From: Octopus sinensis
Lineage: Eukaryota
Assembly (NCBI RefSeq): GCF_006345805.1
Contig: NC_043012.1
Coordinates: 24,738,001 to 24,802,000, forward strand
DNA length: 64,000 nucleotides
Reading direction: 5' to 3'
Each line of letters opens with the position of its first letter. The first letter of the stretch is position 1. A program made the translations under genes and the position numbers. Below, one piece after another: positions 11,421 through 55,351 of the stretch. The notes beneath the pieces were generated by a model. It had not been told where the DNA came from, did not search any database, and worked only from the letters and a program-made list of their open reading frames with translations.

Positions 11421-11840
11421 GTGTGTTCACGCGTGTAAATATATATATATATATATTTATATTGTAGAGAGAGAGAGAGAGACAGAGAGACAGAGAGAGA
11501 GACAGAGAGAGAGACAGAGAGAGTGTCAGACACACGGACGGATGTCTTTGAACGTCTTGGTAACCAGTAATAAGAACCAGAGGTTTTTTTTGGACGGTTA
11601 GTAGGCACGGTGACCCTCAACCAGTTTTGTTCCACGTGTGAGGGTGTGTTCATGCGTGTAAATATATATATATATATATATATTTATATTGTAGAGAGAG
11701 AGAGAGAGACAGAGAGACAGAGAGAGTGTCAGACACACGGACGGATGTCTTTGAACGTCTTGGTAACCAGTAATAAGAACCAGAGGTTTTTTTGGGACGG
11801 TTAGTAGGCACGTTGACCCTCAACCAGTTTTGTTCCACGT
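11421..11840. repeat. Tandem duplication (~200-220 bp unit) overlapping the GRL-A stop codon and 3' UTR
   Basis: 11421-11637 vs 11644-11840; a few substitutions plus microsatellite length differences. Confidence 0.9.
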
Positions 11841-11942
11841 ACGATTTGTGCTATTCGAACACATGCACAAAGACAACTTAGTTTCAGCCGAATCTCGGAA
11901 CTGCACCATCAATATGAAATACGTCACTAACATTCCGGCAAC
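11820..11942 (-). CDS. GRL-A terminal exon 4 (VAGMLVTYFILMVQFRDSAETKLSLCMCSNSTNRTWNKTG*)
   Basis: Acceptor tttctatcttttcag|, phase 0. Contains TYFILMVQF, the TYhhhhhQF signature of the Gr/GRL TM7b pore helix. TGA stop at 11822-11820. Confidence 0.93.
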   Translation of the reverse strand, partial: VAGMLVTYFILMVQFRDSAETKLSLCMCSNSTNRTWNKTG

Positions 11943-13363
11943 CTGAAAAGATAGAAACAAATGTAGTATAAAGAGTAAGCATACTCTAATGTGGTCAAGA
12001 AGCTCATGGTTTCGGATTCAATGCCACTGGTCAGTGCCCCGGACAAGTGTCTTCCATTCCACTATAGCCCCGGGACGGCTAAAGTCTCTTGAGTGAACCA
12101 AGTGGACAGAGACTGTGTAAAAGCCCAATATGCTTATGTATATATATATATATATATAAAGTTAATCCAAACATGAAAACACAAAGAGAAAACACAACAA
12201 CGTGAGGACGTGGAACAAATATAGTATGTATATATATATATATATATATATATATATATAATATATATATATATATATATATATATATATATATAATATA
12301 TTTAACTACTTTCTATATGGTTTTGTATGGATAATATCGTTCAGTATTGATTGAATTGCTAAATAAAGGTTTTGTCTCTATGTATATAGATATGTGTGCG
12401 TATACAGTATATTATATATACTCGCACTTATAAAACCGTTAATTTTTTTTTTCAGTTGCTATAACGACTTTCAGTTTAGAGTATTGGATTTATTTATATA
12501 TATTTATCGACATAAATATCAGATTAATTAGTAACTAGTGACTTATTTTCAATTTGTAAATTATTCAATGGCTGGAATGCTATTGACATTATCACAATCA
12601 TCATCATCATCATCATCAACACCAACACCAACGTCACCACCACCACCACCACCACCATCATAATCCTCATCGTCGTCGTCGTCATCATCATCATCATCAT
12701 CATCATTGCAATTATTATTTCTACTATTATTGGGATCGATAAATTAAGTACCAGTTGAACACTCATCACCATCCCCTAAAATTGCTGCCCTTGTGGCAAA
12801 ATTTAAAATCATTGCTATTATCATTATTATTATTATTATTATTATTATTATTATTTATTATTATTATTATATTACTTCGTGAGACAAAATGCTATTTATA
12901 AGTTCTGATTTCAAATTCTTTCGAGGTCGATTCTGCCTATCGTCCTTTCGGGGGTCGATAAATTAAGTACCAGTGAGACACTGGGGTCGATGTAATCAAC
13001 TAGTCCCCTCCACCAAAATTTGGAACCATTATGCTTGTTGTTGTTGTTGTTGTTGTTGATGTTGTTAAGACGGCGAACTGGCGGAATCGTTACTACGCCG
13101 GACCAAATGCTGAGCGGTATTTCGTTAGTCTAAGCTCTGAGTTCAAATTTTGATAACGTCGCCTTTGCCTTTTATTCTTTTGAGGGTCGATAAAATAACT
13201 ACCAACTGAGCACGGGGGTCGATGTAATTGAGTTAACAAATCCTTCGAAATTGTTGGCATTGCGCCGAAATTTTAAACCATTATTATTGTCATTAATATT
13301 ATTATTATTATTATTATTATTATTATTATTGTTGTTGTTGTTGTTGTTGTTGTTGTTGTTGCT

Positions 13364-13662
13364 ATTGCCTTTGCACAGCTTCTAACGCTGGAGATGTACT
13401 ACGGTGTCAGCTGTTCACTACCAGTAAACTAAGGTTACACCTCTTATTTTTCGAGCATCTTCCGGAGTATTCGACCGGTTCTAAGCAGTGCTGTTTTCTG
13501 CAAGTGCTCCACCCTTATTGCAGCCCGTATTTGTTTCACGTACTTCTCGAGATTTTTGCTCACTGTTCCCAGGGCTCCGACAATTATTGGTACTACTGCT
13601 ACCTTTTTCATCGACTACAACTGCTTAACTTCCCAAGCTAACCTGTCATATCTCTCGACTTT
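13364..13662 (-). mobile_element. R4/Dong-like LINE 3' end, family 2
   Basis: Minus strand reads KVERYDRLAWEVKQL*SMKKVAVVPIIVGALGTVSKNLEKY...LQKTALLRTGRILRKMLEK*. Flanked by (AAT)n and (AAC)n/(AAT)n. Confidence 0.8.
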
Positions 13663-51989: not shown

Positions 51990-54900
51990 AATAATAATAA
52001 TAGACATGTGATTTTTTTTTTTGGTTTTACGCCAACTATGTCCTACAAACTTAAATGTGTTGTTTGTTATATGTATTAACAATGTAAGGTTTCTGCAAAT
52101 TTTGCATTCACAAATTCCACTGGCAAAGGATGGGAAAACTCGAGCTTGAAACAGAAGACATTTAAAACAGACGACAAAGGAACCTAACTTGGAATTACTC
52201 AGTTACGCAAGGAACCTCTTAACCGCAAAGCCATGGGACAAAATATGGAAAATAAGCAGAAATATTGCGTAGAGAAGGAGTTCCAGATAGATAGAGTTTT
52301 AGGGAAAAGTAGTTGAATATTGTACAAATCAAAAGTGAAGTAGCGACTGCAAAAACATATCACTCCACGTGGCATTAGCTCGCATATCACGCAGGCTGCC
52401 TTGTCTTTTGAGCGCGGCTCAGAATTCATATATTTGTAGAGAATTTACCAAGACCCATGAGTATTGTTGCACTGTATATCGTGTCTGTGCTTTTTATAAC
52501 GTCAATAAATGTACATGGTTAAAGTATAGTCTCGTTCTGCAGAAGAAACAATCTTAATGATAATAACTGGAAATATCTGTGGCTGCCACGAAGGTCGGTT
52601 GCTTGTTCTTTAATCCGAGATCATCCTTAATCAAGCTTGTCTACGATTAAATGCATTCCGATGGTAAACATCCGGTCATTTGCTTTGCAGTGTTTCTAGG
52701 ATTACTTTATATAATGTATGAAGCCCTTCTTAAGATGATAAGGTATGCTTTGAGGGAGATTTGGTTGGTATTTGCAGCAAGTCAAGCAGTCATATAGAAG
52801 TATTTTCTTCGGCACAGCCATGAAAGCTTATTAGAAATAATAAATTCCTATTATATACCCACAGAGAATATTCAAAGTATGTTTTTGTTTTTTTTTACAA
52901 TTTTATTAGAACGGAGAAACAAAGATTTGAGACGTTCATATTTTTCTGTAACGTTTTCGTTTCATAAATAAGTTTCTCAGCTGGAATCGTGACATGACTA
53001 AAAATTCGGATTACTGGAAGCGACAAACATTGAAAGTCCAATTTAATATTGATTTCTAATATGAACTAAAGATCAAAGCTCTTTCGGGGCAACGGAGAAC
53101 AAGACTGCATGACAATCATGCCTTTCTCAGCAGCATTATCACTGCAGTGAACCAGTGATTATTCCGTAAGAAACCTACAATGCTGTTGTTCGCAATAGGC
53201 CTGGCATAAACTAATTTAAATAAATAAGAGAAAACATTTCCAAAGAGATATCAAAACCGACATGCATATCTCAGCAAATCGCAGAAGGCGTAGCACATAC
53301 TCTAAGGCCATCGTACAAATTGGCAAAACCTCAAGAAAATGAAACGAGATTTAAAATCGCTTTCAAAATTTGGTTATGATGTCTTTCGTTTGAAGTTACT
53401 GTTTGAAACATCGCAGAATTTTCATTCTGCAAGAAAACATTTCATTCTCAAGGTTAGATTAGTGAGAAAGGTTAATAAAATTGAAGTTCTGATTTCAGTT
53501 CTTGCTGGTAGCTACTCAGAGGAAAACAGGAACGTGGGAAGGAGTTCCGGATGGATGCAGTTAGAACATGGAAATAACGGTTAAAAAGACACACGTCCAA
53601 CATGTTGAACACAAGAACAGTAATATCTTCTTTCACTCGCTTCTGTTCTCAGGACGAATAACGAAACGGGAGCAACACAATGTGCCTGTCTAAAAGTATA
53701 AAGGTCGCCTACTATTTTAAGTATCCCGGTGTTGCCAGCGTGCTAAAAGGGACATTTTTGATAAGGATTTTTAAAGTTATAAAAACCATGTTGAAAGCGC
53801 CAGCAATAAGGCGTTCTCTTTCATTGGCTTCTGTTTTTATGATGAATAAAGAAACAAGAACAGAATATACAAAACGGTTACATATATTAACTTAAACAGA
53901 GCACAAGAAAAAAAAATGAGTAGACGGATGCAGGGCTAATAAGTGAAAAACATTAAATGAGTCAATTGTATGGAAAAATTTGTATCACTGAAATGGCGTA
54001 TTGGCAGACGAAATTCTTTACGGTTCTTGTTCTGCCCCGTGCGTTCAAATCACGCCGAGCTTAGCTTTAGCTTTCATTATTTCGGTATTGATAAATTTAG
54101 TGAACGGAATCGTTAGATCGTTGAAGGAAATCCCTTTGGTATTTTCATTTTTAACTTTTTATTCCTGTTTTATTTTCTTTCTTTTTTTTATTTTGGGTTC
54201 TTGGGCAACAGTTTTAATCCGTCATCCGGTTTAGAGTAACTGACACACGGTGCATTTAGTAGAGTTCACTCTATTCCGCATATTCAGGCGACTTTTGAAG
54301 ATACTGAAAAACAATAAAGGGATCCCCTTCTACCCATGACCTAACTCGTTAAAAAAATAGAGAGCCTGGTATATGTATTTACATGCCGGATGAAGTAATC
54401 TGCTGTATTTATTCCGACACTGTGTTCTAAGTTGGAATTTCCTGAGCTCAAATTTGCATTTCAACCTTTGGTGCCGATAAGTAATGAACCAACACAGGGT
54501 ACTGACTTAGTTAAATCATGTGGTACCTTGCAAGTATTTCCCTGGCGTCCATGCATCAGGAACTTGTGCAAGGAAAGCATTATGGTTCAGAACTTGTAAA
54601 AGAAAGGCTAACTAAAAGTTTTAGAACAAGAATGAATATAAGAATACATTTATGAAAATGTTTCGGACTGGCAAATGTTTAGTGGCTCACGCGCACACTT
54701 GATCATTTAGACATTATGAATTGTTTTGTGTGAGTGTGTGTGTGTATGTGTGTGTGTGTGTGTGTGTGTGTGTGGTGTGTGTGTGTGTGTGCGTGTGTGT
54801 GTGTGAAAGAGAGAGAGAAAGACCGACAGACAGACAGAGTGGGTCAGAGACAAAGAGTGATGGTACGAAAGAGAGAGAGAAAGAAAAAAGGGAAGGAAAG

Positions 54901-55261
54901 AAGGAGAGAGAAAGAGTGTATATGTGTGTGTGTGTGTGTGTGTGTGAGAGAGAGAGAGAGAGAGAGAGAAAGAGTGAGAGTGAGAGATCTGATAAGGCGA
55001 AAATGTTGGATTGGCAAAAGCGACAAAGCATCGCTCAAACTGTTTTACCTTCACATTAATTTTCTCCGACGAAATTCAGAAGAGCCAAAACCATTCAGAG
55101 ATCAACAAATTAGCAAAGAAGTCAAAACTCATAAATAAAAAAACAAAAAAAAAAACGATTAAATATATTGCACAACATTTCTCATCTAAAGCCTTCTTCA
55201 TCCTGAGTCGATGGATCCAGGCCTTCATCTTTATAAATTTCCTCTCATTTTCCTTCTACAG

Positions 55262-55351
55262 ATGCTGCTTTTGTTGAGTAAACTGAACGGGCAGCAGGTC
55301 GGCTTGACGGTTCTACATTTATTTGTGGTCAGTTGGAAAACGATCCTCAAA
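55262..55351 (+). CDS. GRL-B exon 3 (90 nt, MLLLLSKLNGQQVGLTVLHLFVVSWKTILK)
   Basis: Acceptor ctctcattttccttctacag| and donor AAA|gtaagt, phase 0/0. Aligns without gaps to GRL-A exon 3 (L.G..+GL+....V++..T+L). Confidence 0.9.

Follow-up and report, generated by a model that had tools for sequence, protein, structure and literature searches.

Animal gustatory receptor-like proteins (GRLs) are recognised by a small set of hallmarks, namely the motif (T/S)Yhhhhh(Q/K/E)(F/L/M) in the seventh transmembrane (TM) segment, conserved 3' introns, seven TM segments (7TM) and an intracellular N-terminus (Benton et al. 2020, PMC7746228). Their occurrence across Protostomia, including Mollusca, is presented as already established in PMC7746228, which cites Robertson 2015, Saina 2015 and Eyun 2017, and the odorant receptors (ORs) together with Orco represent an insect-specific offshoot of the gustatory receptors (GRs) (PMC11526382). 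A literature search that did not reach Robertson 2015 found no paper dealing specifically with octopus or cephalopod GRLs, and the name "GRL" in mollusc genome papers was set aside because it denotes GRL101, an unrelated G-protein-coupled receptor (GPCR). Here we analyse a 64-kb stretch of Octopus sinensis DNA (contig NC_043012.1, positions 24,738,001 to 24,802,000; hereafter the window, to which coordinates refer unless another sequence is named). The best explanation of this locus, which we consider highly probable, is that it carries two protein-coding GRL genes, GRL-A, which is complete, and GRL-B, an old and unannotated paralogue, both encoding putative 7TM channels. The exons of the two genes and the region between them are as follows.

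29754–30797, minus strand: GRL-A exon 1, 1044 nt or 348 codons, with the ATG at 30797 and a GT donor after 29754.
21445–21513, minus strand: GRL-A exon 2, 69 nt, phase 0 on both sides, with AG/GT flanks.
18606–18695, minus strand: GRL-A exon 3, 90 nt, phase 0, with AG/GT flanks; S7a and the start of S7b.
11820–11942, minus strand: GRL-A exon 4, 123 nt (120 nt plus a TGA stop), with an AG acceptor; the S7b pore helix.
44327–45400, plus strand: GRL-B exon 1, 1074 nt or 358 codons, with a GT donor.
51108–51176, plus strand: GRL-B exon 2, 69 nt, phase 0, with AG/GT flanks.
55262–55351, plus strand: GRL-B exon 3, 90 nt, phase 0, with AG/GT flanks.
30798–44326, no strand: intergenic region between the divergent start codons, 13.5 kb, 26% tandem repeats.

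Splicing of the window revealed canonical AG/GT dinucleotides at the GRL-A and GRL-B splice sites and internal exon lengths that are all multiples of three; because every exon length is divisible by three, all introns of both genes are in phase 0. The parent open reading frames (ORFs) of the first exons span 29676–30797 on the minus strand (373 aa, GRL-A) and 44327–45412 on the plus strand (361 aa, GRL-B) in the ORF listing. Exon 1 of GRL-A codes for S0 through most of S6, its introns are up to 8.2 kb long, and the four spliced exons form a complete gene whose reading frame passes through the motif TYFILMVQF (11924–11898, minus strand, located by a motif scan of the window) and ends at the stop after 441 aa. 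The first residues of GRL-A, MPK, also begin its orthologue on contig ERZ21867824:ctg104916l, which is described below. The exon architecture put forward in the preliminary description, with two long exons pointing away from each other from 30797 and 44327, phase-0 GT donors, a 69-nt and a 90-nt exon behind each of them and a TYFILMVQF exon that completes GRL-A, was therefore borne out at every coordinate by the spliced genes.

GRL-A and GRL-B can be aligned over nearly their full lengths by BLASTP with 22% identity (E 4e-25). In both genes the donor of exon 1 lies at the same aligned protein position, and from that donor across the 69-nt and 90-nt exons the alignment contains zero gaps, in agreement with the gap-free match that had been described for these exons; the strong divergence and opposite orientation of the pair were likewise described correctly. 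By these comparisons, GRL-A and GRL-B are old paralogues arranged head to head, 13.5 kb apart. We built exon-level hidden Markov models (HMMs) from ~50 relatives, with both window genes among them, and scanned the six frames of the 64-kb window with these models. The HMM of the 90-nt exon scored 47.0 bits for GRL-A (E 2.6e-13) and 42.5 bits for GRL-B (E 6.5e-12), the next best score in the window being 6.0, while that of the 69-nt exon scored 18.9 bits for GRL-B and 14.1 bits for GRL-A, followed by 8.4. The HMM of the TM7b exon, which was made from 38 relatives, gave 31.5 bits for GRL-A exon 4 and 7.3 for the next best segment. The 90-nt exons also match the corresponding exon of the limpet gene from Lottia independently in tblastn searches (E 1.9e-7 for GRL-A and 1.5e-5 for GRL-B). 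The exon pattern is far beyond chance.

The spliced proteins were compared with Pfam, as the preliminary description had suggested, and both pass the curated gathering cut-offs of 7tm_7 (26.6 bits; GRL-A 30.1 bits, GRL-B 27.4 bits) and Trehalose_recp (21 bits; GRL-A 27.0 bits, GRL-B 21.9 bits). Word-indexed protein searches, one with a five-sequence profile included, returned just two to three matches each; hence an exhaustive HMMER search was carried out, which collected 472 relatives at E<=1e-3, the named ones coming from Lottia, the bivalve Mactra and the annelid Owenia. 7tm_7 is matched by 79 of the 108 sequences in the alignment, which comprises the two window genes and relatives; among 147 relatives, 50 are ORF calls without splicing whose end lies just beyond the exon 1 boundary. 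The TYFILMVQF of GRL-A fits the TM7 motif as defined in PMC7746228, and the relatives carry a strongly conserved TYFxLxVQF. The conserved phase-0 3' introns are also in place, three in GRL-A and the first two in GRL-B, at the positions found in the Lottia gigantea GRL. Judged by their sequences, GRL-A and GRL-B belong to the GRL branch of the insect chemoreceptor/7TM ion channel (7TMIC) superfamily, the assignment originally proposed, to which GRL-A adds motif, introns and fold.

To describe this fold we used an AlphaFold2 model of GRL-A calculated from the 108-sequence alignment, with a predicted local distance difference test (pLDDT) value of 88.4 and a predicted template modelling score (pTM) of 0.87; a model from a five-sequence alignment reached a pLDDT of 50.9 and was not used for the fold search. 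The model consists of long S4–S6 helices and a split S7a/S7b. In a Foldseek comparison, its top 23 PDB matches are all insect proteins, comprising Gr64a, AgOR28, OR5-Orco, AaOR10, MhOR5, Gr43a, Orco and BmGr9. These 23 GR, OR and Orco matches have E values from 1.4e-8 to 1e-5 and template modelling scores (TM-scores) of 0.60–0.76, and the match that follows has an E value of 0.39. The Orco structure (6c70) was released after the AlphaFold2 training cut-off, which makes it unlikely that the program had memorised the fold. The predicted structure of GRL-A is thus of the GR/OR type and matches both Orco and Gr43a, the two references that had been singled out for this comparison.

Over most segments, the window shares 94–99% of its nucleotides with chromosome OX597828.1 of O. 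vulgaris, and the O. vulgaris locus (OX597828.1:28,988,735-29,033,431) is collinear with it; the window DNA is thus that of a further individual, or of a sister species, within the O. vulgaris complex. Exons are 98.5–100% identical to those of O. vulgaris versus 94–97% for most of the flanking DNA. At the amino acid level, exons 1 to 4 of GRL-A are 99.1, 100, 100 and 97.5% identical and exon 1 of GRL-B is 98.9% identical, all of them being intact. The Nei-Gojobori method yielded a ratio of nonsynonymous to synonymous substitution rates (dN/dS) of 0.26 for GRL-A (4 synonymous and 4 nonsynonymous changes) and 0.12 for GRL-B exon 1 (11 synonymous and 5 nonsynonymous changes). Small as these counts are, both ratios point to purifying selection on the two genes.

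The pair was also found in a distant species, on the 81-kb contig ERZ21867824:ctg104916l from ENA, where orthologues of GRL-B and GRL-A again lie head to head:

11559 to 10441 of ERZ21867824:ctg104916l, minus strand: GRL-B orthologue, 38% identity.
37299 to 38351 of ERZ21867824:ctg104916l, plus strand: GRL-A orthologue, 34% identity, E 1.9e-63.

Because the pair recurs at this distance, its divergent arrangement predates a deep split. The source of the contig is presumably a cephalopod, since it shares the A/B duplication while the Lottia gene is equidistant from A and B. Downstream exons of the two orthologues were not detected within 10-kb flanks, and the introns on this contig are probably larger than those of the octopus genes. 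The intergenic region measures ~12.8 kb in O. vulgaris and 25.7 kb on the distant contig; a search for conserved non-coding DNA between the octopus and ERZ21867824 intergenic regions yielded microsatellite matches only. Logan run ERR12370324 contains related exon 1 ORFs as well.

Two readings would deny that both genes encode channels of this family. According to one, the proteins are G-protein-coupled 7TM chemoreceptors, as their approximately seven predicted helices and the historical naming of the family as "receptors" might suggest. Yet GPCR structures match the GRL-A model only at E>0.4 with a TM-score of ~0.13, whereas GR, OR and Orco channels match it down to E 1e-8 and up to a TM-score of 0.76, and neither 7tm_1 nor any other GPCR family of Pfam is matched even at E<=10. 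The fold comparison of the GRL-A model contradicts a GPCR identity, which we regard as having next to no chance of being correct. According to the other, GRL-B has lost its pore-helix exon and survives only as a truncated pseudogene or relic of a gene. No TM7b exon of GRL-B was found in the 8.6 kb beyond exon 3 (55352–64000, plus strand), either with the regular expression (T/S)(Y/F)x5Q(F/Y/L) or with the TM7b HMM, and both searches, of which the HMM covered all six frames of the window, returned the GRL-A exon only; moreover, GRL-B is covered by no public gene model. The best plus-strand candidate, at 60575–60622, reached 6.8 bits within a low-complexity tract and was rejected. Against a relic, the three exons of GRL-B are intact and have canonical splice sites, exon 1 shows a dS of 0.050 and a dN of 0.006 relative to O. 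vulgaris, and exon 1 is intact in the distant species (ERZ21867824:ctg104916l) too. Since introns of GRL-A reach 8.2 kb, the last intron of GRL-B could plausibly exceed 8.6 kb. The dN/dS of exon 1, which points to purifying selection, also makes a dead gene unlikely. We consider it improbable that GRL-B is a relic, and loss of its TM7b exon less likely than a position past the end of the window.

Several points nevertheless weigh against two GRL genes that encode channels. The 7tm_7 score of GRL-B is just 0.8 bits over the cut-off and the predicted structure is of GRL-A only, and with no pore-helix exon in the window GRL-B may be incomplete. A GRL profile compared with the sequences in the PDB found nothing at E<=10, so that Pfam and the fold provide the link to the solved channels, which is the usual situation in this family. 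No spliced transcript-derived protein of GRL-A or GRL-B was found among 5.8 billion clusters, and the dN/dS values are based on 8 substitutions for GRL-A and 16 for GRL-B exon 1. Finally, we infer the topology of the octopus GRLs from the full-length structural alignment to solved GR and OR channels, and their tetrameric channel function from homology with these insect proteins.

The GRL of Lottia gigantea (LOTGIDRAFT_152656; V4AUT3) matches 7tm_7 and Trehalose_recp, as do the octopus GRLs. Its exons are 1074, 66, 90 and 93 nt long and its three phase-0 introns are at the positions of those in GRL-A; the counterpart of the octopus exon 2 is thus the 66-nt exon, and GRL-A exon 3 is 47% identical to the 90-nt exon. 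The last exon starts at the same position in both genes (VIGMLITYFVLLVQF in Lottia, VAGMLVTYFILMVQF in octopus), with VAGMLVTYF in GRL-A corresponding to VIGMLITYF in Lottia, and the full TM7 motif reads TYFVLLVQF in Lottia and TYFILMVQF in GRL-A. The Lottia protein is 24% identical to GRL-A and 22% identical to GRL-B and therefore equidistant from them, and an attempt to place it in the A or B lineage by score was abandoned, synteny alone favouring A. This synteny is provided by a small PDZ-domain gene, the end of which lies at the left margin of the window:

1077–1130, plus strand: end of the coding sequence (C-terminus) of the small PDZ-domain gene, which is transcribed towards GRL-A.
40491–44697 in the O. 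vulgaris locus, local positions: PDZ gene.
15621–19019 in the Lottia locus, local positions: PDZ gene.

In the window, the gene is recognised by a 14-aa match at 1077–1118 (IRPKGPLKFSPWKH in the window versus LRPKNPVKFSPWKH, E 2.8e-4) with a stop shortly after. In O. vulgaris (112 aa) as in Lottia (118 aa), a small PDZ gene and the GRL are arranged tail to tail. The range of the O. vulgaris gene extends to about window position 5850, which suggests a long 3' untranslated region. Because a small PDZ gene is convergent downstream in both octopus and Lottia, GRL-A would be the positional orthologue of the Lottia gene, and from gene structure and PDZ neighbour together GRL-A is probably the orthologue of LOTGIDRAFT_152656. 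Upstream of the Lottia GRL there is no B-like gene within 10 kb, and a short-chain dehydrogenase gene is located there instead.

By homology with the solved insect GR and OR structures, the octopus GRLs would have an intracellular N-terminus and assemble as tetramers, in which the S7b helices would line a central cation pore as in the GR/OR channels (PMC7746228, PMC11526382). A ligand pocket would be formed inside the transmembrane bundle of each subunit, binding of the ligand would open the gate, and the Q/F end of the TYhhhhhQF motif would be located at this gate.

For the role of such channels we favour a conserved ligand or internal sensing over a broad external taste repertoire, because the genes are old, conserved and apparently low-copy, have retained synteny and show no lineage-specific expansion. 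That they are functional 7TMICs with a conserved internal, developmental or non-chemical sensory role, and not one in external taste or smell, is a possibility to be taken seriously, although we hold it to be short of an even chance. A and B each have an orthologue at 34–38% identity in a distant species and are old and low-copy, GRL-A shares exon structure and PDZ neighbour with a gastropod gene, and the window contains just two GRL genes, with no other named octopus GRL in the protein searches. Non-chemosensory roles are also on record, in body patterning for a Nematostella GRL and in warmth sensing for Drosophila Gr28b(D) (Saina 2015 and Ni 2013, cited by PMC7746228 and PMC11526382). However, conserved single-copy GRs of insects, such as the fructose receptor Gr43a and the CO2 receptors, are chemoreceptors all the same. 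Rather unlikely, in our estimate, is an obligate heteromeric channel of GRL-A and GRL-B, with the intergenic region that they share serving to co-regulate both genes. Among GRs and ORs there are known cases of heteromeric channels (PMC11526382), and the divergent arrangement has been kept both in O. vulgaris and where the proteins are only 34–38% identical, but a distance of 13.5 to 25.7 kb separates the start codons, unlike in a classical bidirectional promoter, and the matches found between the intergenic regions of the two species were limited to microsatellites. In addition, Lottia lacks a B-like gene within 10 kb upstream of its A-like gene, and retained synteny alone can explain the linkage. 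The asymmetry of conservation expected of an Orco-type system was not observed, A and B being 34% and 38% identical to their ERZ21867824 orthologues; because they are about equally diverged between species, neither resembles the highly conserved Orco. The earlier idea of a tuning subunit with a co-receptor accordingly found no support. Conservation of the pair in a distant species fits a functional link without showing one, and any co-regulation or co-assembly of A and B seems doubtful to us. We give similarly little credence to the wider proposal that the pair is an ancient cephalopod-wide unit, a heteromeric 7TMIC with shared regulatory DNA that serves as a sensory or internal detector of nutrients, gas or temperature independently of the chemotactile receptors.

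Whichever role applies, our reading of the locus as two GRL genes bears on the public gene models. GRL-A is not new as a gene, since it carries a gustatory-receptor name in UniProt (O. bimaculoides) and at NCBI (O. vulgaris). Its identity to A0A0L8FSD6 of O. bimaculoides, named "Gustatory receptor", is 88% with 99% of the query aligned (92% over exon 1), and it is 99% identical to O. vulgaris "gustatory receptor for sugar taste 61a-like" across the C-terminal 21% of the query. Both proteins are orthologues of GRL-A, the O. vulgaris locus being syntenic, and both models are faulty. A0A0L8FSD6 omits the conserved 69-nt exon. The O. vulgaris model is 97–100% identical to GRL-A exons 2–4 but is devoid of the whole 1044-nt exon 1, so that most TM helices are missing; it opens instead in a translated minisatellite, which is followed by an odd exon at 24805–24689. 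The minisatellite is located in the intergenic region of the window:

36302–36652, no strand: 22-bp x 16 minisatellite (Tandem Repeats Finder, 85% matches), matched by the N-terminus of the O. vulgaris model in tblastn.

It is read as ~120 N-terminal residues with a 22-aa periodic MSYTSEKDVLYIR... repeat, and this N-terminus is almost certainly an annotation artefact. The segment 24689–24805 (minus strand), a coding exon (KFSHNGCSLSLAWVRYHLLNDIRPRNSDV...) that replaces exon 1 in the O. vulgaris model, lies within GRL-A intron 1; it has no family signal and may be an artefact or serve as an alternative 5' exon. The name "sugar taste 61a-like" is an automatic label and no evidence of sugar sensing. 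GRL-B is called as a gene in neither the O. vulgaris nor the O. bimaculoides annotation and has no close protein among the 5.8 billion clusters, the sole matches being unspliced exon 1 ORFs of another organism at 38% identity. Of the genes announced as "hidden", GRL-B is indeed unannotated, whereas GRL-A had already been named in public records.

The introns of both genes were said to be rich in repeats, and tandem repeats make up 15% of the whole window and a larger share, 26%, of the 13.5 kb between the genes, with fragments of long and short interspersed nuclear elements (LINEs and SINEs) in the introns. The C-terminal tail of a retrotransposon ORF is present twice, at 62294–62986 and 29231–29584 (both plus strand), and the copies have MPIHTDREIKANRPDIVVRDHEEKKC... 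in common. The former scores 27.3 bits against Pfam zf-RVT, for which the cut-off is 27.5, and the latter lies a short way into GRL-A intron 1, past the donor of exon 1. A SINE-like dispersed repeat, NPVRNWYLFNRPRKDERQSRPRWNLNSE... in the ORF lists, occurs at 23571–24119 (plus strand, two tandem copies), 61293–61601 (plus strand) and 15132–15455 (minus strand), which makes four copies or more, located in GRL-A introns and on the downstream side of GRL-B. The intergenic segment 32001–36000 is of extreme composition, with a GC content of 0.218 and a GC skew of +0.30 at 32–34 kb, followed by a GC skew of −0.52 and an AT skew of −0.41 at 34–36 kb, where there are long pyrimidine-rich microsatellite tracts. 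Also intergenic is a 234-aa cysteine-rich ORF at 40217–40921 (minus strand) that belongs to no Pfam family and may be transposon-derived.

The locus represents no new kind of system, as mollusc GRLs and the mechanism of GR/OR channels were already established. The new points are the recurrence of the pair, the PDZ neighbour in common with Lottia and the purifying selection indicated for both genes. Our analysis restores a full-length GRL-A of 441 aa, where the public models lack an exon in one case and most of the protein in the other, and adds GRL-B as a second, previously unannotated paralogue, thereby correcting and completing the annotation of a receptor family hardly studied in cephalopods. 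The arrangement of the pair, the gastropod-like exon structure and the PDZ neighbour are indicative of old, constrained genes and not of a recent chemoreceptor expansion, and make the pair tractable candidates for asking what non-insect GRLs do.

Among the systems that have been described, the insect GRs with solved structures (Drosophila Gr43a and Gr64a and Bombyx Gr9) belong to the same Pfam family as the octopus GRLs and share the predicted fold of GRL-A, with TM-scores of 0.61–0.76 over ~400 aligned columns, as well as the TM7b motif, which is part of the subunit interface and gate (PMC7746228); they differ in that their identity to GRL-A is only 13–16%. The insect Orco/OR heteromers also have the fold predicted for GRL-A (6c70, E 8.8e-7; OR5-Orco, 8z9a), and like them the two diverged octopus subunits could in principle co-assemble. 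Within the same animal, the chemotactile receptors are candidate ionotropic sensory receptors as well (PMC11526382). Unlike the GRLs, they are unrelated pentameric Cys-loop channels derived from nicotinic acetylcholine receptors, with up to 26 genes in O. bimaculoides, and their expression in suckers and their ligands have been demonstrated, whereas the GRL pair is low-copy and known here from its genes alone.

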